64,000 nt of DNA from Oikopleura dioica (lineage: Eukaryota; Animalia; Chordata), in contig OU015568.1 of NCBI GenBank assembly GCA_907165135.1, positions 1,984,001 to 2,048,000 of the forward strand. The letters run 5' to 3'. The notes under the pieces were generated by a model. It did not search any database, was not told the origin of the DNA, and saw only the letters and a list, made by a program, of their open reading frames with translations. The stretch's first letter is position 1, and every line of letters begins with the position of its first letter. The translations under genes and the position numbers were made by a program. Below, piece by piece: positions 36,518 to 52,600 of the stretch.

Positions 36518-39500
36518 ATGCTTGCTGCAAGAATCCAGCCCTCCTATTTGACTACTACTTGTCAAGCTGGTTTCAAAAGCTGCACTTTGACGAACGAAAT
36601 GAACCTCTGTGCTCATCTGCTTCATCAATGCACGAAATCGAAGAATTTTACTCAACCTCTTGTGCCCCTTTCAGACAAAAAAATTAACGAAGATGGTCTT
36701 GTATTCTCTGAGGAAGAAAATGGGATCAATCGCCGACGATGCAAGAAGCAACAGTTCTATGACCAAATGGTTTGCCGGCATTTGTGTTCGAACACCATCG
36801 TTCTGAAATCAACGAGGAAAGTCGCCTTTAAAACCTGCGAGAAATTGTGCTTTGAGTTAACAAGATCTACCTCTGATGCTGGCCAAATTTGTCCTTTTGA
36901 TAAATACTGTCAATCTGGCTGTCCCTGTAAGGACTACCAGTGCGAGAAGATTGAAAACGATCAGACAATGATTCCAGCTTGGGACTTGAGAAATCAAACA
37001 ATCAAAGGAAAAGTCAGATTATTTTTATAAGTTTTCTTGAAGTAGCCATCATGGCTTACCCTCATGCCGCATAGAATAAACCAACTTTCTGTGTGAGGAC
37101 AATGTTGCGTATTCGGTTTTTTAACATGTCTAGCTCAGGCAAGCATCGATAGTGGCGGTGTGGTACTTCAGAGAAAGCGCCCTCTTGCGCCATTTTCTGA
37201 AAAAAAAACGAAAATAGGAGCGCGCAGCGACAAAACGACCTCGAAATCAAGCACTCCTGGCCTTTACTCATCCCATTTTTGAGTCCGCTTTCGATTGTCT
37301 AACAGGTAGGAATTGTCCCCATGCCTACTCTCTCCTATCCCTCTCGCCTCTTACCACCAAAAACATCAACACACGAGAAACGAACTTCTGACGACCATAC
37401 CGACCGTATCGCAAAGCCACTATTAATAATAGTCTATTATGCTTGCCTGCTGGCAAATTAGGGTCCTAACAGCCGCACTACCGAAAAATTGTTAGGGTTC
37501 TAACTCAAAATTAGTGCGAATTAGTGCGGCATCCCCGTCCTACCCGTCCTATTTTTTTTCTTTGATATTTTTTCGTCTATTAGGACTGAATCGCCGTCCT
37601 AACCGTACTAATTAGGAGGCTCTTTTTCATCATCCAATCGGCGCGCGCTTCCCACCAGGCGCGGAGGACAAATTGGTGGAAGATTGAAAAAAGAATGGAG
37701 CTGAATGGATGAGAAAAACGAATGACCCGCCATGATTCAAAATCGAATTCAATATATAATGAATGCTGATGAACTATTTTCTCTTTGTTATTTGCAGTAA
37801 AGGGTTCAAAATATATGCGAGACAAATTTCAGAGGCAGAAATGAAAAATAAGGACAGTTGCAACGCCTTTTACTTTTCAAGTAACATATTTTTTCTTTAA
37901 ATAGCTATATTAAAACAGCCTTATCTCAAAAAATCTAAAAGCCGCAATCTCAATAATGGGTGTTTATATGTAACAGACACTTGGCTTTTATCCTCAATAA
38001 AAATTTTATGCATAGCTATTGGGAATATTTTTTAAAAATTTTTTTTCTAATGTCCGAACAGGACTAATATGGAAAATTTCACGTTTTTAAAAGGAATCTC
38101 CAAGAATTTTTTCTGGTTTATAGGTGCTAGAAACATGGTCAATGGCTTATATTGGAGCTTTCTAAGCGTTTTCTACTCATAACTGGAATAATAAATGATC
38201 TGGGTATCCTCTGAGATTTTCTAGCGCCTCGAAGTTGACTGAAACTACCAGATACGAGAATTCAAGAATTTGAACTTTTGTTCTAGGCGTGCTATGATTA
38301 CGATCGATAGCTTTTCTTGAAGCTAAGTAATCACTGAATTCATCGACGTGATATTTTTGGAACCAGCTGGTCATTCTGGTGGTTCGTCGCGGTCCAAACC
38401 TTCGGATGGATTGAGATCCGGCAATATGTATATCAGAATGCATATTTTTTGATAAGAAGTCGTTCCAACAGATTTTCAAACAAAACCATTCCGTTGACCG
38501 ACCGTTTCACAGCGGTTCCAAACGGTTCACGCTCCGAGTATTCACAAAATATTGAAATATGTATATCAAAATGCCTCTCTACTCAAGAGGCCTCTTTAAA
38601 ACTCATTTTCGAACAGAACCACTTGGCTAACCGCCCGGTTCACAGTGGTTCAAAGCGGTTCACGGTCTGAATACTCACAAAATATTGAAATATGTATATC
38701 AAAATGCCTATCTACTCAAGAGGACTCTTTAAAACTTACTTTCGAACAGAACCACTTGGCTTACCGCCCGGTTCACAGCGGCTCAGAGCGGTTCACGGTC
38801 TGAATATTCACAGAATATTGAAAGATGAACATTAAAATGCTTTTCTACTCAAGAGGAGTCTTTTAAACTGATTTACGAACCAAAGCACTTGGCTAACCGC
38901 CCAGTTCAGAGCGGTTCAGAGTAGTTCACGCTCTAAGTATTCACAAAATGCTGAAATATAAATATCAAAATGTATCTATAAGTCTTTTTAACAGATATTC
39001 GAACCAAACTACTTGGCTAAATGACTGGTTCGTCGTGGTTCAAGACAGTTCATCTTCTATTTACAGTCCCATTCATAAAATTGAGTCTGCGACGGGGCGA
39101 AGCTGATCCGAAGGTGAGGCCAGTCTCGTTTATTCAATTGAGTCGGTGACGGGGCGAAACCGACCCGAAGGGGAAGCCAGTCTCGCTTATTCAATTGAGT
39201 TTGCGACGGGGCCAAGCCGACCCGAACGGGAGGCCAGTCTCGTTTATTCAATTGAATCTGTGACGGGGCGAAGCCGACCCGAAGGGAGGCCAGTCTCGTT
39301 TATTCAATTAAGTTTGCGACGGGGCAAAGTCGACCCGAAGGGAGGCCAGTCTCGTTTATTCAATTGAGTCAGTGACGAGGCGAAGCCGACCCGAAGGGGA
39401 GGCCAGTATCGTTTATTCAATTGAGTCAGTGACGGGGCGAAGCCGACCCGAAGGGAGGCCAGTCTCGTTTATTCAATTGAGTCTGTGACGGGGCGAATCC

Positions 39501-42500
39501 GACCGGAAGGGAGGCCAGTCTCGTTTATTCAATTCAGTTTGCGACGGGGCGAAGCCGACCAGAAGGGGACGCCAGTCTCGTTCATTCAATTCAGTTTGCG
39601 ACGGGGCGAAGCCGACCCGAAGGGGAGGCCAGTCTCGTTCATTCAATTCAGTTTGCGACGGGGCGAAGCCGACCAGAAGGGGACGCCAGTCTCGTTCATT
39701 CAATTCAGTTTGCGACAAGGCGAAGCCGACCCGAAGGGGAGGCCAGTCTCGTTTATTCAATTGAGTCTGCGACGTGGCGAAGCCGATCCGAAGGGAGGCC
39801 AGTCTCGTTTATTCGCAGACTAAATTGAATAAACTGGACTGGCCATTCGGATCGACCTGGCCCCGTCCCAGACTGTATTGAATAAATGGAACCGGCCTCC
39901 CCTTCTGGTCGGCTTTGCCCCGTCGCAAACTTAATTGAATAAACGAGACTGGCCTCCCTTCGGGTCGGCTTTGCCTCGTCACAGACTCAATTGAATAAAC
40001 GAGACTAGCCTCCCCTTCGGGTCGGCTTCGCCCCGTCACTGACTCAATTGAATAAACGATACTGGCCTCCCTTCGGGTCGGCTTCGCTCGTCACTGACTC
40101 AATTGAATAAACGATACTGGTCTCCCCTTCGGGTCGTCTTCGCCTCGTCACTGACTCAATTGAATAAACGAGACTGGCCTCCCCTTCGGGTCGGCTTCGC
40201 CCCGTCGCAAACTGAATTGAATGAACGAGACTGGCGTCCCCTTCTGGTCGGCTTCGCCCCGTCGCAAACTGAATTGAATAAACGAGACTGGCCTCCCCTT
40301 CCGGTCGGATTCGCCCCGTCACAGACTCAATTGAATAAACGAGACTGGCCTCCCCTTCGGGTCGGCTTCGCCCCGTCACTGACTCAATTGAATAAAGGAT
40401 ACTGGCATCCCCTTCGGGTCGGCTTCGCCTCGTCACTGACTCAATTGAATAAACGAGACTGGCCTCCCTTCGGGTCGACTTTGCCCCGTCGCAAACTTAA
40501 TTGAATAAACGAGACTGGCCTCCCCTTCGGGTCGGCTTCGCCCCGTCACAGATTCAATTGAATAAACGAGACTGGCCTCCCGTTCGGGTCGGCTTGGCCC
40601 CGTCGCAGACTCAATTTTATGAATGAGACTGTAAATAGAAGATGAACTGTCTTGAACCACGACGAACCAGTCATTTAGCCAAGTAGTTTGGTTCGAATAT
40701 CTGTTAAAAAGACTTATAGATACATTTTGATATTTATATTTCAGCATTTTGTGAATACTTAGAGCGTGAACTACTCTGAACCGCTCTGAACCGGGCGGTT
40801 AGCCAAGTGCTTTGGTTCGTAAATCAGTTTAAAAGACTCCTTTTGAGTAGAAAAGCATTTTAATGTACATCTTTCAATATTCTGTGAATATTCAGACCGT
40901 GAACCGCTCTGAACCGCTGTGAACCGGGCGGTAAGCCAAGTGGTTCTGTTCGAAAGTAAGTTTAAAAGAGTCCTCTTGAGTCGATAGGCATTTTGATATA
41001 CATATTTCAATATTTTGTGAGTATTCAGACCGTGAACCGCTTTGAACCACTGTGAACCGGGCGGTTAGCCAAGTGGTTCTGTTCGAAAATCAGTTTGAAA
41101 AATTCCTTTTTAGTAGAGAAGCATTTTTATATACATATTTCAATATTTTGTGAATACTCGGAGCGTGAACCGTTTTGAACCGCTGTGAACCGGTCGGTCA
41201 ACGAAGTGGTTTTGTTTGAAAATCTGTTGGAACGACTTCTTATCAAAAAATATGCATTTTGATATATATATTGCCGGATCTCAATCCATCCAAAGGTTTG
41301 AACCGCGACGAACCACCAGAATGACCAGCTGGTTCCAAAAATATCACGTCGATGAATTCAGTGATTACTGAGCTTCAAGAAAAGCTATCGATCGTAATCA
41401 TAGCACGCCTAGAACAAAAGTTCAAATTCTTGAATCCCGTATAATTATCACGTTTTTTTTGAAACTTTAAAAATTATTTAAAAAATATTCCCAACTCTCA
41501 CGGCATCGAGACATATATCATTCGAATCGCCAGCTTCTGCGTTTTCGATACATATATATTTCCCTTTTGCGGCTTTCAAAAAATTTTTTTGTGTCCGACC
41601 CTATTCTAAAAGACCTAATTGAGCTTGATTTTATTCAGCAAACATCTGAAAAGAAAATGCATATCACGAGTAATCCATTTTTCGCATTTCATGATGATGT
41701 CTTTCCAGCTTTTGCGAAAAACATCGCATCTCAGAGATTATTTCCTCCGTCAGGAAACGCTCCCAAAACTATAAAACATAAGTTCCAAGGGAAAAAATGC
41801 ACTCACAGTTGAGAGCTCATTTGATTCAGCAAGTGGCCTTTCCCCTCCTTATCCGCGCGTGCTTATTCCCGACTTTGCTTTTGCTACCTTCAAAACTGAT
41901 GTCGAGCGCTTTTCTTTCACATCTTTCAACGAATTTGACCACATTTCTTCCTTTAAACTCGATTATAACGAAACGAGAAAACTCAATCTTGATCTGAAGA
42001 CAACAAATCAAGGAACTGCGACGAGAATTCTTGACTTTCAATTTTTCAATGGAAAGTCGCTTTTTCAAATGAGACTGTTTCAAAATGGCTCGCTCGGAAC
42101 AATATCTGATTATTTTCAAGATGAAATAATTCTCGACAATCTTACGCTATCTCACTGGATTTCGATTGAAATCAACTTTATTGCTCAAAACGACTCTACT
42201 ATCATATTTGAAGTCAATAACAACAGTACAACACTTGCATCAAGGACGATGATCGACTTTCAAAAAATCATCGATAATCGTGTCCGTCTCTTCAAATTCG
42301 ACGAAGTTGTTGAGCTCAAAAATGTGTTCTTCTTTCAAAATCAGCCGAAACAGATCAGTGTTATTTTCAACGATGATATGTTTGAAATCGAGTATGCTCT
42401 GTTTGGCGATGGCTCGAGAAAGGAAATAAAAATATCTCCACCGACAGAAATCGGCCGTACTCTTGCAGAATATACGGATTTCAGCACCTTTGGGATGGTA

Positions 42501-45500
42501 AATGATCAGTTTTATGTTTTTGGAGGGAATAAGGATGCAAGAAAGGTTGTCAAAATGGATAAACTTGATGTCTAACTCCGTTTTTAAAGATAGCGCGACT
42601 TGAAAAATGTGGACTTGTGGAGGTTCAAGCAAGGTTTCAGTCGAAATTCCTTGCGTCTTCCTCTAGTTTGACAATCAATGGCGGTAAAACAGGTAAATTT
42701 TAGAGAAAATGTGAGCATCGATGACAAATAATGGTTTATAATTAAAGGGTCAATGCATTTGCTGGAAACACACTCCCACTGAGACTCTAGCTCCTGGGAA
42801 TAAAAGACAACAATTCTAGTATTTAGCTGCTGCTTCTACTTTATTCGAGAGACAACTGACCAGCCGAGACTGGCACTGCGCGCGCAACGTCCCACTGATC
42901 AGTATCAAAGTTCAACGGGTTCGCCCGGAATGCGCTAACCCTTTACCTCCCCTTGATACAGAACAGTGCGACAATAAGTAAGATACAGGTAGAATGTCCC
43001 TTTCGGGCTCGAAGGAACATCGGTAGAGTTGGGACAGTCGGCGGCAGATTTTTTGAAGAGATTTTTGTACGGTGGTGAAGCAGCAAACTTTTTGATCCTA
43101 AGCAGTAGACAACTTCCCAATCCCCAAAAAGCATCAGAAACCCAATTGCCAACACTAGCCTTCGTACTTTTTCTTCGTAGAATCCAGCGAGAGGCGGGAT
43201 GGACGGAGAATATTTCGCTTGGGGTGAGGAGAAGACGGGTTGGAAGTAGATCTTTGGGGTTGTGACGAAGCCAGGATCGGGAGCGAAGATGGGATCAGAG
43301 ATGTTGACTCCGTCGCCGAGCCAGATTTTGGAGCTTCGAATAGAGGCTTTGGCGGAGCGATCGGAGGGAGAGAAGATGGGATCTTTTCGGGCGGCTTGGG
43401 CTTGCGTGACCGAGATTGTGACTCGATACCCTTACCTCCCCTAGTCACATGATCGTTCTGCTTTATTTTCGACTTGAAGTTTTTGATCAAGTGTGGCCAT
43501 TCGGTCAAGTCCAGATTTTGATCGTAGTTATCAAGGGAAGAAACTCTTTTCTCGATCGCGACGACATGGGAACGATGAATAAGGTCAACGGGGCGGTTTG
43601 AGTTTTCGACGAGGCAGACCTGCTGGTTGGTAGATTTGAGGGTGGAGGGGCCATTCCATTTTGCGTTGGAGTTTTTGGCGTCTCCGGCGAGTGAGCGTAG
43701 CTTGACAACTTGGGGTTTCAGTTTCGAAGCTTCGGTGAACTCGAACTTTATGTTTCCAAGTAAATTGCTTACTGAGTAGGAGGAGATATTGCTGTTGCGC
43801 AAAAAATCTCGTCCTAAGAGTGCTGGGCGGCATCGGCCATCCATCACAGTTGCGGCGAGCTCGAACTGAGGGCCTTTGTCGAATCTAACCTTGCAGTAGA
43901 GGGTTCCCCTTGGAGTTTCAGCTACTCCGCTAATACCGGCTACATCGTGGTTTGGAGCGCTCAAATTGCGTAGCACGTTTTGGGGAATCACATGCGAAGG
44001 CAGAATCGTTAAATATGCGCCAGCATCGAATTCGATGTTGCAGTCGAACGAATCTTGTCCTGACTGAAATGTGGCGCGTAGAAAGTATCCAGGGCGAGAT
44101 TCGACCTTTTCGGTCAGGTGCACTGGAATTGCAGAGAAGAGGGCATGGACATCGGCGAAATTATCGGGTTCCACATTGTAGTGGCTTTTACGCTGCATTT
44201 GGTCGGGCTTTTCGGACTTCTCGTCCTTTTTCTGCGCAGAATTCGGGTCCCGATTGTGCCAAGAGCGTTTACCCTCGCCATGTTTTCCATAACCTTGCTT
44301 TTGTTTGTTGTTGGATCCGGGTTGAGTTTTGTTGACGTTGATGACATCTGAAGAAACGCGGTTTCGGCGACTGGTCTCGGCTTTGAGTGCGAGGTCATTA
44401 AGCGTGAAGGTTTTGTCGATGGAGGTCAGAAGGGCATTGTAAGTGTCGGGCTCCTGGTCTCGGAGGGCTCTGACAGCGAACATTGTTGCCCATGCTTCGT
44501 GGATATCTTCTACATTTGGCTCAGCATCGTTGTTAGCGGCTTTGAAGGTTTCGAGAAACGCGGCTTTTGCCTCAGCAAGTTTTGTAGCTAGCTCGGATGT
44601 AAAATGAGTCACGGGGCGCGATCGGTCAAAAACGATGTCGCTGACATCGAGCATCAGTAGAAAATGCGAGATTTTTGGGCCATAGTGCTTTTTTAGAAGC
44701 CCGATGGCGGCGTCGACGTCGTCACAGGCGCGGAGATCGTTACCGATAAATCGGGCGACGTTCGGAGCTAGTTTGCTGGTAAGAGCGTTGAGGAATATTT
44801 TTTCGTCGCCGTCGCGGCGTAGATGACTGTCTTTGAATACCCTCATCGCTGTTATGAAATCCACGAACTGGCCGGGGCTATTCCCTTTGAAGGGCTGGAT
44901 TGACGCGAAGCTTTTGTAGAACAAGTTGCATATGTGCTGCTCGCGCTGGTCGTATTCCCTGTTGGAATTTTCGGCCGGTGGATTGGCGTATTTGCGTTTT
45001 CGGACCAGGTCCTTGTAGTGCAAGAATAGCTCGCGTTCTTTTTGGAGCTGTTCTTCCTTCATTGTGAGTAGTGCTTTATCAGTCGGAGCCGATTTGAGCT
45101 TCTTGTCGAGATCAGCGATGAAGTCGGCGATTTGTTCCAGGGCCCCGTCGCATCTTTCGACGGTTTCGGGGAGATTTGGCATCTCCGAGATCTACTAGAA
45201 CGGGCGAATCACTGATTTCGAGGATTTCTACCTTGACCGACCCGTTTCTCAAAGACAAGAATTGTCTAGGAGAAATTTACGGGGTTTGAAGAGCAAATGG
45301 AGATTCAATAGCGGTCGTAGCAGTTGATTGATGTCGAAACTTGGCGGGAGATGTGCGATTTGGAAGAGCTGCCGGGCTAAGAGGAGCCGATTTACTGCTT
45401 TCGAGCGAAATTACCTCGACCGGTCCGACTAACTGAGACTTTTGGGGGTCAAAGTTAGATAACGGACTTGGAGAGCGCGAAATGTCGTTGAAAATAGGCG

Positions 45501-46858
45501 TCAGCGGCGGCGCGAGATCGAAATCGCAGCGGTTGCTCAAGTTGACGTGGCAAAACGGTTGGCGCGGCGGTACTTTTCCACACGCGGCGAATACCGAAAG
45601 TAAGTACACGAGTGCTGATCCAGGTTCGTAACGGCCTTGGGCGGAGAAAAACGCTGGACAGGGTAGAAGACGATCAAAAGTTGGGTAGGGTGGGTGGTAT
45701 TTGTCGAATCGTAGGGTACTCAGCTGATTTTGGAGAATTTGGAGCGATGAGATGGATGTGTCGAGCGGTAGACAAGGTGGAGGGTTGAAGGTGTAAGTTC
45801 TGGGGCCGCGGGAGTTCTCTATGTCGAATGAAGCGTAGTCTCTGACACCACTAAAGGGTCAATGCATTTGCTGGAAACACACTCCCACTGAGACTCTAGC
45901 TCCTGGGAATAAAAGACAACAAAAAAGACTAGTATTTAGCTGCTGCTTCTACTTTATTCGAGAGACAACTGACCAGCCGAGACTGGCACTGCGCGCGCAA
46001 CGTCCCACTGATCAGTATCAAAGTTCAACGGGTTCGCCCGGAATGCGCTAACCCTTTATAATGTATTTAGCGATGGTTTGTTTTGCTTGGGACTCGAAAA
46101 ACAGTGCTGAAAAGAATAGAGCGTGTGAGCTGTTTGATGGATTTAATGTTTCGAGTTTTATAAGCACCAATGAAGGGCACTATCAAGGACGCCTGGGTAT
46201 GCACAATGGAAGACCGACCGCGATTGCTGGTAAAACCTATCCCTACTTGAACGAAGGTTACTCGGAAACTTTGACCGAAGAAGGCTGGGTCGAAATCGAA
46301 AGACACCCCAGGTATTTTTCTGAAAGTGAATTGACGATGTTAATTATGATGATCCTCAAGATCGATGTCGTTGTTTTCCGTCGTCGGATTTCCTGCTGGA
46401 GCACTCGCAACGTTGGGCGGATGGAACGGTGGAGATGGAAAACAGATGAATGAAATTTGGTTGCTCGAAGAGAACTGGAATCTTATAGGAACACTTCTTC
46501 AGGTTATCAATTTTTTATTAAAGTGATAGCTATTAGCTTATTTTTAATTAAATTTATTCAGCCGATGTACGGTGGATCGTCAATTTTGATTGAGGAATCG
46601 AGTGTTTACCTCTTTCCGGGTAACAACCGCGATGATGCCAGAGCTATTCAGAGAATAACAATAGGCAAGGATGAAAAACATAAAATAGCTGGTTATTTGG
46701 TACACCTTGACTTTTATAAAACCACCACAGAAGTAATTTTGTGAATTTTTTTGAAAGATGGAAATGATGTCACGAAAATCGAAGTTGTTGGATACCACTC
46801 AAAGTACACTCGTTCTCCGATTATTTTTGTATCACCACTCAATCTGTGCTCCGTTTAA
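36518..46858 (+). CDS. Cys-rich / kelch-like family member, copy 3, interrupted by large insertions
   Basis: Cys module at 36518-37010 (CRHLCSN...ICPFDKYCQSGCPCKDYQCE), MHITSNPFFAFHDDVFPAFAKN at about 41658, kelch-like exons FYVFGG (about 42510) and LGMHNGRPTAIAG (about 46200), ending ...SPLNLCSV* at 46858. That these pieces form one gene is inferred from colinearity with copy 1. Confidence 0.6.
37266..37358 (+). ncRNA. Spliced-leader (SL) RNA gene copy
   Basis: 37266-37305 reads ACTCATCCCATTTTTGAGTCCGCTTTCGATTGTCTAACAG, the 40-nt O. dioica SL exon as I recall it, with one difference at 37288. It is followed immediately by a donor GTAGG and a GTAGG...CCTAC hairpin. The 3' end is approximate. 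Confidence 0.85.
38369..39050 (+). repeat. ~133-bp tandem array (left arm; mirrored at about 40640-41320)
   Basis: CCGGTTCACAGCGG-type anchors at about 38502, 38635, 38768 and 38901, with degenerate flanking units. Confidence 0.85.
39075..40620. repeat. 56-57-bp minisatellite, 13 forward plus about 14 inverted units
   Basis: Unit GACGGGGCGAAGCCGACCCGAAGGG(G)AGGCCAGTCTCGTTTATTCAATTGAGTCTGT. Forward anchors at 39091, 39148, 39205 ... 39771. Confidence 0.92.
43155..45182 (-). CDS. gag-pol: Gag-aspartic protease ORF fused in frame to an integrase-like C-terminal tail; RT, RNase H and IN core absent
   Basis: Coiled-coil/capsid-like Gag, protease motifs IEFDAGA and ALLGRDFL, and a Pro/Ser-rich tail ending KRNILRPSRL. 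No YxDD or DDE motifs. Confidence 0.85.
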   Translation of the reverse strand: MPNLPETVERCDGALEQIADFIADLDKKLKSAPTDKALLTMKEEQLQKERELFLHYKDLVRKRKYANPPAENSNREYDQREQHICNLFYKSFASIQPFKGNSPGQFVDFITAMRVFKDSHLRRDGDEKIFLNALTSKLAPNVARFIGNDLRACDDVDAAIGLLKKHYGPKISHFLLMLDVSDIVFDRSRPVTHFTSELATKLAEAKAAFLETFKAANNDAEPNVEDIHEAWATMFAVRALRDQEPDTYNALLTSIDKTFTLNDLALKAETSRRNRVSSDVINVNKTQPGSNNKQKQGYGKHGEGKRSWHNRDPNSAQKKDEKSEKPDQMQRKSHYNVEPDNFADVHALFSAIPVHLTEKVESRPGYFLRATFQSGQDSFDCNIEFDAGAYLTILPSHVIPQNVLRNLSAPNHDVAGISGVAETPRGTLYCKVRFDKGPQFELAATVMDGRCRPALLGRDFLRNSNISSYSVSNLLGNIKFEFTEASKLKPQVVKLRSLAGDAKNSNAKWNGPSTLKSTNQQVCLVENSNRPVDLIHRSHVVAIEKRVSSLDNYDQNLDLTEWPHLIKNFKSKIKQNDHVTRGGKGIESQSRSRKPKPPEKIPSSLPPIAPPKPLFEAPKSGSATESTSLIPSSLPILASSQPQRSTSNPSSPHPKRNILRPSRLSLDSTKKKYEG
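45841..45850 (-). promoter_or_regulatory. Primer-binding site (tRNA-Leu-like)
   Basis: TGGTGTCAGA, one nt inside the 5' LTR, complementary to a ...TCTGACACCA tRNA 3' end. Confidence 0.7.
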
Positions 46859-47250
46859 AAGATGTTGTAAAATTAAATTTTAACAAAATAAAACACTCAC
46901 AATTGAACAAGACTAAGTCGTTACAAGCACTGAATAACAATAATCAATCTCGATAAGAAGACAATTTATGTGTGGTTTTATGACGGAAGAAAAATTATGG
47001 TCTCGAACTTTTGTAGAAAAAAGCAAGTTTGTTCTGGCGCCAAAGCGTGAAAAAAGATGAACTTTCCCGCGCGCTGCGATTGGCCAAAACCTGGCGCTTT
47101 CCAATTTTATGCTTCGAGAATTGAGAGAAAAGAGGATGACCTGAATTGCTGATTCTAATCAATTTAGAGAATACTTGAAAACTGCTGCTCATTTCGCGTG
47201 AACATAGAAATTAAGAAACCAATTTTACTTTCTAGAGAAATCGTCGGCAG

Positions 47251-49068
47251 ATGACTTTTCGAGATCAGTTGAGATCGTACGGTCGGTACCATGCCATCGC
47301 CTTTTTCGGTACATTCATCACTTATGCCTTCTTCCACGCTTCTCGAAAAACCCTCAGTAATTCGAAGGATTCTATCTCCCTTTTCTGGACCAACCCCGAA
47401 TTCAATTCTACCTGGCCAGCTCCGTAAGTCCTTCATCTACTTTTTCTGTCCTTACAAAAGAGAAATTTAGAAATGACATGAAGAATTGGGCGAAAAATGC
47501 GATGTTCGAGAGCTACGAAGATGCTTCTGTTTATTTGGGCGTTTTAGACACGACTTTTATGGCATGCTATTCGATCGGGCTGTTTATTTCCGGATGGATT
47601 GGTGAACGAGTCGAGGTAAATAACTGATTTCCTTCTTCAACGTAATGAAAATTTCTAGCTGCGAAAATTTCTCGCTTTTGGAACGCTCCTAAATGCCTTG
47701 ACTCTCTTCACATTCGGCTGCATTCTTCCCTGGACAAACTGCACTTCGAAATTCCTCTGGGCTCTCGTCTGGGGCCTTAATGGCTTCTCCCAATCAACAG
47801 GCTGGCCGACGGTTGTTTCTATCATGGGAAATTGGTTTGGCATGGAAGGAAGAGGTCTGATTCTTGGAGTTTGGTCCGCCTGCCAGAGCGTCGGAAACAT
47901 CATGGGAGCGATGATGGTGAATGACTTTCTCGAGTATGGTTTTGATATGAGCTTTTTGTTCGTTTCCTGCTGCTTGCTTTGCCTCTCAGGTAAAGAGTAG
48001 GATTGACGCTTTCTTGTTAATTTATGATAAAAGGGATCATCTTCGTTTCCATGGTCGACCATCCCAAAATGGTTGGCCTCCCTTCTGTAGACGGAGACGA
48101 AGAACAAGACGACCAGGTTGCGATTATGGACGATCAGGACAATCCGCTAGACGATACACTTGAAGATCCACCATCCGTCAAAATTACGACTCATGGCCAA
48201 GCCGTTACTTTTTTCGACGCAATCAAGGTTTTCTTCTTTCTGCCGATTTCTATTGAGCATTTTTTTTCTAGCTTCCTGGAGTGGCCGAGTATAGCATCAG
48301 TTATTTCGCCCTGAAACTAGTCAACTACAGTTTCTTCTTTTGGCTGCCGTACTACATTCACAATGTCTTTCACTGGCCCGATAGTGAGTCGAATTCGGTT
48401 TCAATTTGGTTCGACGTTGGTGGAATCATTGGAGGCGTCGTTGGTGGAGTAGGCAGCGATCTTTGGGGACTCAGGAACAGTTTGAAAATCCTTTTTCTTT
48501 CGTATCGTTTCCGGGTGTTGAAAAACTGAAAAAAGATCACCTGTTGTCTTTGGAATGGCTCTTTCTGCGGTTCCAAGTCTCGTTGGGCTCAATAACTCGC
48601 CTCCAACAAAAGCTGCTGCAAGTTCTCTCATGGCGCTCGTCGGCTTTTTCGTCGGTGGAGCTTCCAACATTATCGGTGCTGCTTGCGCCGCAGGTACTCT
48701 AGAATAAATCAACGTTTCTTCAACCTGTTTTTCTAGACCTCGGAAAAGCCGCGATTGAAAATGGCATGCCCTCAGCAGTCGCCATTGTCACAGGAATCAT
48801 CGACGGAACTGGCTCTGTCGGAGCAGCAGTTGGGCAAATCGCCATTCCAGAGATTGAAAACAACTTTGGGTGGAGTAAGGTTTTCTACATGTTCATGGCG
48901 GCTGGGCTGATCTCTGCAGTGGCTCTGATTCCCGTTGTTTACCGAGAAATCAAGCGAAGCAGGAGGAGTTCAAGTTCGAACGAGGAAGAGTCGAGAGTGG
49001 AGCATTTAGAAGATTCCGGGAGGTTTCAAAATAAAACGACTAGTATTCCGCTTTTCGAAATCGGCTAG
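47251..49068 (+). CDS. SLC37A3: Sugar-phosphate exchanger SLC37A3-like (MFS)
   Basis: YAFFHASRKTLSN, LNGFSQSTGWPTVVSIMGNWFG, ACQSVGNIMG, LKLVNYSFFFWLPYY, VTGIIDGTGSVGAAVGQ. Confidence 0.88.
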
Positions 49069-49627
49069 TTAGTAATTAGCGAGCCTTATTTAGTAGTAAT
49101 CCTATTCCTACCTAGTATAAGTTCAAGCATTGACGATGCTGCATTGTACAATTATAAATCTGTAAATCTGCCAATTCTTTAGCTCAAAGTTGCAATATAG
49201 TCAATTTTACCTATCAACCAGGTTGATTCAACCTAATTTTACCTATTTCTAAATCCGTTTTTATGTGAAAAATTTTGAAATCTTGAAAAAGACCTCAACG
49301 AATAATTCCACATTTCTGCACTTCTGCGATCGATGATCAGCTGTTTCATTTTTTTTTCAATTCAAGTCTGTTGCATTCATCTTTACTTCTATTTACTTAA
49401 TTCTTGTACCAGCTACTGTAGTACCTACTACTGATAGTGTATCAGCCGAGGTTCTTTTTCAACATTCAATTTTTCGCCCAGATCTTACCTTTTTTACCAT
49501 TTTTCATCATTTTTTATCGTATTAAAAGTTTATTCATGAAAGAATAATATATTCAATAAAAGAACACAATCAACCCAACCCACTTTTTAAAGGAAAATGA
49601 ACAGCGCGCACTAGTAGCTGCTCGAAA

Positions 49628-52600
49628 ATGGCGCAAAGTTGGTCGGAATTATGGGCTCACTCGGGATGGGTTGAGCTCTTTGTTGCGGCGCTGATCATTT
49701 TCATCACGACATCGGCGATTCTCTTCATTCCTTCGAAGAAAAACGAGGGCGAGGATGCGAATGGGAATACGAGAGAGGATAAGAGTGGAGAAAACTCAAC
49801 GCCGCCCGAGTCGGATGAGACGAAAAACAAGCTTCCACGGCAATATCGTCGAGTAACTACTTAATTCTTCGAGAAACAGACTTATTCTGATTCTAGCTCA
49901 AACGACAAGCGACGAAGAAGTTCGACGAGTTTAAACGCGCAACGCATTCGAAAATTATCAGTATTCATGATAAACTAAGAGACGGTTTACCTACCGGTAA
50001 TCAGAGTTATTCAATTCACTTACCAGTACAGTTACACTCACATTTACCCACAGTATCACAGTTAATTTAATCTCACGAATAGAATACAAGAGTTGAAATG
50101 GTTGTGGTTCAAATTAAAAATCACTGATTCGGAATGATTCATTTTGCCAAGTTGATCAAGTAATTACTGCATGGATCTTTTCTGACTAGCACTAGAATCG
50201 AAAGAACTAACGGGTCTTTTTCTCTTCTCTAGGTCAACCGTACTTCAATATTCCTAAGATCTCGCACTCTGGTAGACCACTAACGCAAAAGGTACAGAAT
50301 TCGCATGAAAAAACTCTAACGATTCTCTCTTCCTCTATTATTTTATCTTCAGCCCCTTCTTCTTTCAGGAACGAACTCAAATTCTCCTGAAAAAGCTCCT
50401 GCAGCTTGAAAAAGAACCCGAGCACCTCCTGGTCAAGCAGATTCCGGAGTATTTATTGAAAGGATCTGAAGTGGAAACTGATGATCGATTGCCTTCCGAG
50501 TTCCAGTTTTTGCTCAAAACTGTCCGAGTTTTTGGACACTTTGACAAGCCGGTGTTTCTGTCGCTCTGTAAACACATGAAAGTACAAGAGCTCAAGCAAG
50601 ATGAGTACTTGTTCAAGATCGGGGACAAGGACGAGTGGATTTACGTTGTCCAGGTACAGTACCACGGTGTTTTCATCTTTCATTTTTCACTAGACTGGCG
50701 CAATTGACCTCTTCGTCCAGCAAGGAAGCCATGAAAAGCTTATCGCAGAAGTCCGCCCTGGGGAGTCCATCGCGTCTCTTCTCTCTGTTCTTGATGTCCT
50801 TACAGGACACGCAGCACCATACAAGACCGTTTCCGCAAAAGCCCGCGTAACATCGACGATTATCAAGTTGCCAGCGAGCTCGATTCTCAAAGAGTTTGAA
50901 AACTTTCCCGCCAGTTTGGTTCGGATTGTCCAAATGATCATGCTTCGTCTCCAGCGAGTGACCTTCCTCGCGCTTCATGACTATCTCGGTTTATCTGAAG
51001 AATTGATCGATGCGCAGGCGAAATCGTCTCTTCATCGAACTCCTTCGCGAAACAGCAGCTTACGAACCTCTGTGTCTTCCGACGAAATGAACGGGCCTCT
51101 GAACTCACCAGAAACCCCAAATCGCAACGAAAAAACTCACTCTCTTCGACGAACAAGCTCGTTTTCCAGCCGAAGACCGCGTTTCAACGAAGTAGCAACA
51201 GTATTCGAAACGGCCGAGGATGGAGTTTCAGAACCAGCAACTTACAAACAAGGCAAAAATGACAACAATGATTTCAACAACGCGATTGAACGAGCCTTCT
51301 GCCGCGACACCGATGACAATCTGTCCGATTCCGCCATCAAGGAGCATCCAAAGAGTCCAAAATCTCCTCAACCAAGGAAGAATCCAAATCAAAACCGCCG
51401 TGAAAGTTTTCTTCCTTTCTTCGACGAGGAAATGTTTGAAGACGCCGTTTCCGAGCTTGCTGATATCTTTGGCTTAGAGAACACTGATGCGATTACTGAT
51501 AAATTGGATATGGCGAAAGTCGAAGGAGGAACGGTCATCTGCGACGAGGGCGATCAAGACCTCTGCCTGTACTACATAGTTTCTGGCTGCCTTGTCGCTC
51601 AGCAGCGCTGTGGCGATCGGTCTGCAACGCTTTACGAAGCTACGAGAGGCTCGATCTCCGGCCAATTGAGTGTTCTCACAGGCGAGCCAACATTCTTTAA
51701 AACGACGGCGAGGGAAAACTCAATCCTCTTGAAGATGCAAAAGTCTGACTTTTACGCTCTTATGCGCGACTACCCCCGCGTGGTTTTGAATCTAGCCGCC
51801 ACTGTAGTCTCTCGACTGTCGAAATTCGTCCGACAAATTGACTTCGCGCTCGATTGGGTGCAATATGAAGCTGGGCAAAAACTTTTTGCGGAAAATGAAC
51901 AAGCGGATTGCATCTACATTGTCCTAAGTGGTCGGTTGAGAGGAGTGAAGGAAGACGGAATCGTCTGCGAGTTTGGAAGGGGAGAGACTGTCGGACTTAT
52001 GGATCTCTTCCGATCCCGGGTGAGAACTCTTTCGGTCCATGCTGTTCGAGACACGGAGGTTGCCAAGATTCCAGCTGCGCTGATGGAGCATATCAAACGC
52101 CTCTTTCCGTCAACGATTCAGAACATCATTGCGCTTATGACAGACCAAGTAGCCATCAATCACAGCAATCGTCTCATGGCTAATCAGCAGAACATCTTCA
52201 ACAAGGAAACATACGGTGGCCTAGCAAATCAGCTCGCAAATGTATCAACTGTCGCAGTCCTTACTTCTGATCCTGACGTGCCGCTAGAAATTTTCTCTAT
52301 AGAAATTTCAAACGCTTTGAACGCACATGGAAAGGTGCAGCGATTGGCAAGTGATTTGGTCAAGCGACGACTGGGCGAGAGGATCTTTGAAGTCCAAAAT
52401 GAATTTCGCTTGACAACATGGCTCGGGCAGCAGGAAGATATTCACAGAGTAACGATCTACCAGTGCGACGAGAAGCTGACGGAGTGGACAAAGAGGTGCT
52501 TGAGACAGGCTGATTGTATTTTGGTCGTTGCTCTTGGCGGCTCAAAGTCGAAGATGGGCAGTTTGGAGAAGGAAATTGAAAACTTCGCGACAAGAGCATT

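Follow-up and report, generated by a model that had tools for sequence, protein, structure and literature searches.

Introduction

Positions 38255–41439 of a 64,000-nucleotide stretch of Oikopleura dioica DNA (assembly GCA_907165135.1, contig OU015568.1, positions 1,984,001 to 2,048,000 of the forward strand; hereafter the window) hold a 3.2-kb palindrome made of nested tandem arrays, and the question raised by this locus is whether the palindrome is a transposon in its own right or a part of some other element. An initial annotation, made from the letters alone, had taken it for a foldback element of an undescribed family that duplicates TA. It was found here that the larger interval 37739–41603 very probably represents a composite cut-and-paste transposon of O. 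dioica that is non-autonomous and, in this copy, 5′-truncated, and that the palindromic core of this composite derives, in all likelihood, from a second and commoner family of true foldbacks, whose own termini it lacks. O. dioica has one of the smallest genomes among animals. In the assembly concerned (OKI2018_I69; 64.3 Mbp, 19 scaffolds), 44% of the predicted repeats lack a classification, and the median intron measures 49 bp (PMC8008620).

True borders of the element

The terminal 216 bp of the palindrome were used as a query against the window's own assembly, which gave 41 matches, and the 30 nt outside each of them were compared. Outside the supposed left end (38255) these 30 nt were conserved in all copies and were recognisable even in relatives of 70% identity, and outside the supposed right end (41439) they were conserved among the young copies. 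Copies at other loci shared sequence beyond the palindrome, 516–690 bp on its left side and 168 bp on its right, and were bounded by 8-bp duplications; the homology between the window copy and the other young copies extended from 37739 to ∼41603. The borders first drawn at 38255 and 41439 are refuted by the conservation of sequence beyond both of them in other copies, and so is the TA duplication, as both TAs sit inside conserved sequence and it is 8-bp duplications that bound the full copies. A Tc1/mariner-like TA target-site duplication was also considered as such and rejected, the flanks of the supposed ends being conserved between copies rather than unrelated. After these comparisons it is hardly credible that 38255–41439 could be a foldback transposon complete in itself and belonging to an undescribed family that duplicates TA. 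The palindrome is real and TA does adjoin both ends of the inverted repeat, but the left TA belongs to sequence conserved in all foldback relatives and the right TA to the conserved right unique region, and the shared flanks continue at other loci up to the 8-bp duplications.

Alignment of four full left ends showed that the element starts with TAGGGTCGGACACAGAAAAAA, which is the inverted match of the right end, ...GTGTCCGACCCTA. Full composite copies, which range from ∼2.0 to 13.5 kb, carry terminal inverted repeats of 13–20 bp (TAGGGTCGGACAC...) at both ends, and perfect 8-bp duplications were found in all four of them (CTCTAGAT, CTATAGAT, GTATAGAC and CTCCAGAT). Read from left to right, the composite comprises the left terminus with ∼600 bp of unique sequence, a 98-bp piece that is homologous to the foldback family and has no counterpart on the right, the palindrome, and finally another 168 unique bp with the right terminus.

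In the window copy the right terminus is still present at 41591–41603 and is followed by TTCTAAAA. Its left side matched only positions 173–700 of a 700-bp full left-end query, the first 172 bp being gone, and no second TAGGGTCGGACAC terminus was found anywhere in the 64-kb window. Because the match starts at position 173 and a second terminus is absent, the copy is regarded as 5′-truncated, and without its left terminus it is therefore probably immobile. The left copy of its 8-bp duplication would have been lost along with the truncation. An intact version would measure ∼4.0 kb. In practical terms, the window palindrome is probably a dead, truncated copy rather than an active novel transposon.

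Architecture of the palindrome

A repeat search of the window detected outer arms at 38260–39229 and 40466–41435 (970 nt, 96% complementary), together with many register-shifted pairs that are caused by the internal repeats. Tandem Repeats Finder delimited 133-bp arrays at 38472–38972 (3.8 copies) and 40723–41272 (4.1 copies), and 57-bp arrays at 39079–39814 (13.0 copies) and 39816–40631 (14.5 copies). By module mapping, the order from left to right was terminal module, four 133-bp units, junction, 13 57-bp units, a centre of ∼9 nt at 39815–39823, 14 57-bp units, junction, four 133-bp units and terminal module. The initial description of two nested, mirrored arrays was therefore correct, including 13 and ∼14 57-bp units, the unequal number of these units between highly similar arms and a nearly absent spacer; only its ∼5 133-bp units per arm had to be lowered to ∼4.

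Global alignment of the two arms gave identities of 97.2% for the terminal module, 96.2% for the 133-bp array, 99.1% for the junction module and 89.2% for the 57-bp array, with 93.2% overall, and the gaps were due mainly to one additional unit close to the axis. The motif GCGAAGC, known to form a very stable DNA mini-hairpin, was observed in 16 of the 27 57-bp units (39079–40631), always on the same strand of the unit.

When the central 1431 nt were folded as single-stranded DNA, one long hairpin of −727 kcal/mol was predicted, and single 57-bp and 133-bp units folded no better than their shuffles (z of −1.2, +0.2 and −0.9). A transcript through the palindrome would likewise be a very long hairpin, which raises the possibility that the host has co-opted the palindrome as a hairpin-RNA or small-RNA locus, or as a structural element; hairpin-RNA loci arising from inverted repeats are reported in flies (bioRxiv 10.1101/2022.08.22.504821). 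We consider such a co-option very unlikely at this locus: conservation is limited to the transposon family, the copy is decaying, and Rfam at the gathering threshold reported nothing in 30000–50000.

Sister copies and instability of the palindrome

The unique left regions of five young copies were 96.5–99.0% identical, and each of these copies was found to have its own internal structure, in agreement with the rearrangement-prone behaviour that had been expected of the palindrome. In module maps (133-bp units/57-bp units on the left, the same modules mirrored on the right), the window copy reads 4/13 and 14/4, copy C2 1/5 and 7/4, copy C4 3/6 and 17/4, and copy C5b, in which all 57-bp units are lost, 1/0 and 0/4. 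The fifth, copy C5a (C5:8579950–8593421), measures 13.5 kb and is bounded by a single duplication, CTCCAGAT; inside it, a 2.65-kb segment that starts in the left unique region and takes in most of the palindrome is present three times in tandem, and there is also a 5-kb foreign insertion. Among the sister copies, units have thus been deleted centrally or on one side, the 57-bp units have been lost altogether in one case, and triplication and the insertion of another element have also occurred. Such different structures, despite unique parts that are 96.5–99% alike, are direct evidence of instability of the palindrome.

Substitutions diagnostic of the left or the right arm were common to several copies; therefore, the palindrome is older than the spread of the family, and for the most part the arms have evolved independently. 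The initial annotation had described unit variants as partly mirrored across the axis. This held for a few variants within one copy, and the few sites that agree within one copy are compatible with occasional arm-to-arm conversion.

These copies also bear on the possibility that the palindrome is an artefact of assembly or sequencing. The assembly is nanopore-based (PMC8008620), and fold-back chimeras occur in such data; nevertheless, an origin of this kind has next to no probability. Four other loci with different flanks, and no fewer than 17 loci of the parent family, have this architecture too, so that it is not a one-off chimera, and the arms of the window copy differ at 105 aligned positions with arm-specific variants shared between copies, which is not expected of a chimera of one strand.

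The composite terminus was not confined to copies with a palindrome. It was found that TAGGGTCGGAC occurs 67 times in the genome, compared with 13 times for the reversed control, mainly as pairs 200–560 bp apart; the same terminus therefore also bounds several short element families.

Parent foldback family

The modules of the palindromic core were compared with foldback elements that have TAGGCTTA(C/T)CGCGG termini. The identity was 84–91% for the closest subfamily and 70–78% for the others. Five complete foldbacks (L031–L035) measure 4.6–7.8 kb, end in TAGGCTTACCGCGG and are flanked by perfect 8-bp duplications (AGCATGTG, ATTATGGG, CAAATAGA, CCTATCGG and TCAATATT); with a 950-bp member, whose duplication is CTTATTCC, such duplications were present in all six elements with both ends read. 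At the insertion sites of the family, AT occupied positions 4–5 of the duplication in nine of nine cases. In the genome, 40 occurrences of the foldback terminus were counted (14 for the reversed control), the architecture of the family was seen at a minimum of 17 loci, and the 57-bp unit gave 411 genome matches. Among the matches listed, plus and minus blocks stood opposed, and most lay inside mapped foldback elements. The composite lacks the outer part that belongs to the foldback family itself (∼220 bp at the left, ∼320 bp at the right), so that its core is enclosed by foreign ends.

Pure foldbacks have arms whose outermost ∼450 bp are non-repetitive. The arms within one element were 99.0–99.3% identical in L033, L034 and L035, compared with 95.1–96.4% between these elements, which by sequence indicates homogenisation within elements. 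Nevertheless, L033, L034, L035 and L030 each possess one 'a' and one 'b' tip, which differ over ∼15 nt just inside the terminus. The distinct tips suggest that the two ends may be functionally distinct and shielded from homogenisation. The long open reading frames (ORFs) of L031–L035 were also tried as transposase candidates and rejected: they are repeat read-through, with no Pfam family above the cut-off.

Candidate transposase-binding motifs

The commonest 6-mer of the arms, GGTTCA, was strictly oriented, with eight plus and no minus occurrences in the left arm of the window copy (38255–39078) and 11 to 0 in L034. The core of the foldback terminus, GGCTWACCGC, was found in three of the four 133-bp units of each arm, oriented as a true terminus would be, and its count in the arrays was reached by none of 100 shuffles. 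Because of these copies of the terminus core and the oriented GGTTCA motifs, the 133-bp arrays are most likely multiplied putative transposase-binding sites.

Superfamily assignment

Elements of the Ac group prefer nTnnnnAn targets, and Ac itself ends in TAGGG; the terminal start motif of hAT elements, as in Ac, hobo and Hermes, is (C/T)A(G/A)NG. Published hAT elements have 8-bp duplications and termini of 10–25 bp (PMC3942097), and the target consensus of the Buster group is nnnTAnnn (PMC3517528). Over both families described here, an 8-bp duplication was present in 10 of the 10 elements with both ends read. All five composite target sites fitted nTnnnnAn, four of them with a central TA, and both TAGGGTCGGACAC... 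and TAGGCTTACCGCGG agree with hAT termini in length (10–25 bp) and start motif. The ends and duplications point to the hAT superfamily, the foldbacks agreeing with it in these lengths but not in the target consensus.

Genome scans for a master element with PF14372 and PF14291 gave nothing, and zf-BED (PF02892) gave one unrelated match. As a separate observation, a 4.4-kb hAT element with the terminus CAGGGTGTCAAATC and internal short tandem arrays was found at L055:1492–5857 and L056:4205–8571. PF05699 marks seven near-identical genome sites of this element, and the two copies compared were 98.4% identical, from which it is probably active. A ∼200-bp element ending in TAGGGTCGGAC was observed ∼1 kb from the CAGGGTGTCAAATC-ended element.

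A candidate transposase

The foreign insertion in copy C5a is a 5,017-bp element (L037:4188–9204; C5:8582306–8587322) that lies in the terminal module. It has the terminus TAGGGTTGGCC (longer form TAGGGTTGGCCAAAAAAA), which is followed by an A-run, and the 8-bp duplication TTACTTAG; nine of 11 positions of TAGGGTTGGCC match the composite terminus. Its minus strand contains a split gene, the exons of which were searched individually. A 297-aa exon gave one close match in a word search, and by exhaustive search this led to a 773-aa homologue, P0002 (61% identity), which aligns along the whole gene. For the 297-aa ORF there was no Pfam match, no sequence match in the PDB and no similarity to the local PF05699-bearing ORF. 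P0002 likewise showed no Pfam domain and no PDB sequence match.

The AlphaFold model of P0002 was poor, with a mean predicted local distance difference test score (pLDDT) of 59, and contained a confident core at residues 430–570. Foldseek returned no match for this model. Alignment with VIA-align against 48,161 chains gave a sole match at Z ≥8, the Hermes transposase 8edg_A, with a Z of 9.7, a value in the range below ∼13 that can occur by chance for helical models; the root-mean-square deviation was 5.0 over 207 residues (model 335–632 on chain 198–609), and the next best Z was 6.7. By eye, VLGxDGS, SDSAAN, a C-x-x-H motif and DCERSFS could be recognised in a protein of the P0002 family, in the order of the hAT catalytic blocks. 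On the model and these motifs, the P0002 family is probably, though not proven to be, a hAT-like clade invisible to Pfam, and a clade of this type is a plausible source of the enzyme that would move the composite family.

Points against and other superfamilies

Several results weigh against a hAT origin with a transposase of this kind, and the poor model, the silent Foldseek search and the modest Z value of P0002 belong to them. Neither family was found to contain a transposase gene, nor was one present between the termini of any inspected pair, among which the pairs at C3:196712–199508 and C14:70727–71966 (2.8 and 1.2 kb apart) and the unpaired foldback termini are not counted, and the centres of the large foldback members L031–L035 contain only further 57-bp units and no transposase. 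The genome matches of PF05699 (hAT dimerisation) belong to other families, with CAGGGTGTCAAATC or CAGGGCTGCCGAATTC as termini. None of the nine foldback target sites fitted nTnnnnAn or nnnTAnnn, all nine having a central AT. The 5,017-bp element and the composite have only the first ∼11 nt and the A-run in common and no subterminal sequence. The account also relies on a proposed route for the entry of the core into the composite.

An alternative to hAT would be a different superfamily that makes duplications of ∼8 bp, either P/Galileo-like or MULE/Foldback. P elements make 8-bp duplications at a target motif containing CAGAC, and one classic foldback, Drosophila FB, belongs to the MULE type. 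Another, Galileo, is of the P type (PMC4168063). No hAT transposase with exactly these termini was found, and the NNNATNNN preference of the foldbacks fits no published hAT consensus. We nevertheless judge this alternative unlikely: 8-bp duplications were present in 10 of 10 elements, the termini start with TAGGG or TAGGC, the composite sites fitted nTnnnnAn in five of five cases, and the protein of the similar-terminus element had Hermes as its best structural match. A genome scan with PF12017 (P transposase) gave no match, to which little weight is given as the controls were also silent.

Proposed origin

Under the hAT assignment, both families would be moved in trans by hAT-type transposases. 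As they differ in target preference, we infer that two transposases are involved. The mover of the composite would be an enzyme with Ac/Buster-like target choice and may belong to the Pfam-invisible, Hermes-like clade, and that of the foldbacks would be an enzyme preferring NNNATNNN. For the entry of the core into the composite, one possible route is a nested insertion that later lost both foldback tips, and another is incorporation as filler DNA in gap repair. A wider proposal is that several foldback and composite families are driven by a lineage-specific, Pfam-invisible hAT-like clade (P0002), with a so far unreported NNNATNNN preference in one of these families. Their tips would stay distinct, and their cores would be homogenised by conversion and would be rearrangement hotspots in this very compact genome; this is offered tentatively, as the chances are rather against it.

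Neighbourhood of the window copy

The window copy sits in a repeat cluster with a spliced-leader RNA unit, a 289-bp interspersed repeat and a downstream long terminal repeat element. The break at 37738/37739 directly adjoins a complete copy of the 289-bp repeat (37449–37737), of which at least 20 genome copies of 95–99% identity were found and which has no obvious terminal inverted repeat. Since this repeat ends exactly where the truncated element starts, its insertion may have removed the left 172 bp of the element. The spliced-leader RNA gene unit occupies 37154–37367, with the leader starting near 37267; it has at least 30 copies of 84–90% identity, which elsewhere are often inverted pairs, and Rfam at the gathering threshold gave no report for it. 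Eight ORFs flanking the element had no Pfam match. The features of the window copy are collected in Table 1.

Table 1. Modules of the truncated composite copy in the window, with positions counted from the first letter of the window.
Feature	Position	Strand	Basis
Left unique region of the composite, truncated; matches positions 173–602 of full copies	37739–38156	+	
98 bp with homology to the pure foldbacks; outward extension of the left arm, no right mirror	38157–38254	+	
Left terminal module of the palindrome (an 'end' in the initial annotation)	38255–38471	+	Genome matches, module mapping
Left 133-bp array, ∼4 units	38472–38972	+	Tandem Repeats Finder, module mapping
Left junction module between the arrays	38973–39078	+	Module mapping, arm alignment
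Left 57-bp array, 13 units	39079–39814	+	Tandem Repeats Finder, module mapping
Centre of symmetry, ∼9-nt spacer	39815–39823	unstranded	Module mapping, arm alignment
Right 57-bp array, inverted; module mapping gives 14 full units	39824–40614	−	
Right junction module	40617–40722	−	Module mapping
Right 133-bp array, ∼4 units	40723–41223	−	Tandem Repeats Finder, module mapping
Right terminal module of the palindrome	41224–41435	−	Genome matches, module mapping
Right unique region of the composite, ending in the terminal inverted repeat TAGGGTCGGACAC (41591–41603, minus strand)	41436–41603	+	
TTCTAAAA, surviving right copy of the presumed 8-bp target-site duplication; fits nTnnnnAn, central TA	41604–41611	unstranded	

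Comparison with known systems

The composite represents a new family, but the kind of element is known: hAT-like, with 8-bp duplications. It resembles non-autonomous hAT elements and MITEs (miniature transposable elements with inverted repeats) such as Ds, Mar and the BuT2 MITEs in its TAGGG termini, in perfect 8-bp duplications that vary from copy to copy and in the lack of coding capacity. It also shares with hAT MITEs the nTnnnnAn/nnnTAnnn target pattern, which the foldback family does not follow, and the presence of several unrelated short families with the same terminus. Unlike in hAT MITEs, the interior is a 1.2–3.2-kb palindrome of nested arrays and no autonomous partner with an identical terminus was found; Pfam does not recognise the nearest candidate enzyme.

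Drosophila FB elements have inverted arms of tandem repeats that reach the tips, with variable unit number, 9–10-bp duplications and MULE-type enzymes; they are unstable, and most copies lack a transposase. The long inverted tandem-repeat arms, variable unit numbers and structural instability observed here are similar to those of FB, in contrast to the 8-bp duplication (10 of 10), the internal position of the arrays and the non-inverted unique ends of ∼600 and 168 bp. Sea-urchin TU elements have 8-bp duplications and modular long inverted arms with tandem sub-repeats. Compared by description only, they agree with the present elements in modular arms, 8-bp duplications and a deuterostome host, whereas the unit sizes and the composite ends are specific to the O. 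dioica family. The likeness to FB and TU proposed initially therefore stands as far as modular foldback arms are concerned. The contrast then drawn with TU, on account of its longer duplication, no longer applies, since the duplication actually measures 8 bp.

Galileo makes 7-bp duplications with the consensus GTANTAC and is associated with a P-type transposase; its arm length is very variable through ∼140-bp internal tandem repeats and insertions, and many of its copies are two-arm, transposase-less and rearrangement-prone (PMC4168063). Variable arms with internal tandem repeats, insertions and transposase-less copies are common to Galileo and the elements described here, which differ from it in having 8-bp instead of 7-bp duplications. 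The view that the family is undescribed holds as far as the literature searched, in which no description of foldbacks for Oikopleura was found, Dfam and Repbase being outside this search.

Implications

One unclassified repeat of O. dioica is now assigned to two related families with 8-bp duplications, for which true ends and target preferences are available. From the five sister copies it can be seen how rapidly a palindrome of kilobase size breaks down, through central deletions, duplication and truncation. A probable Hermes-like transposase was missed by domain scans, which may explain why such elements stay unclassified.

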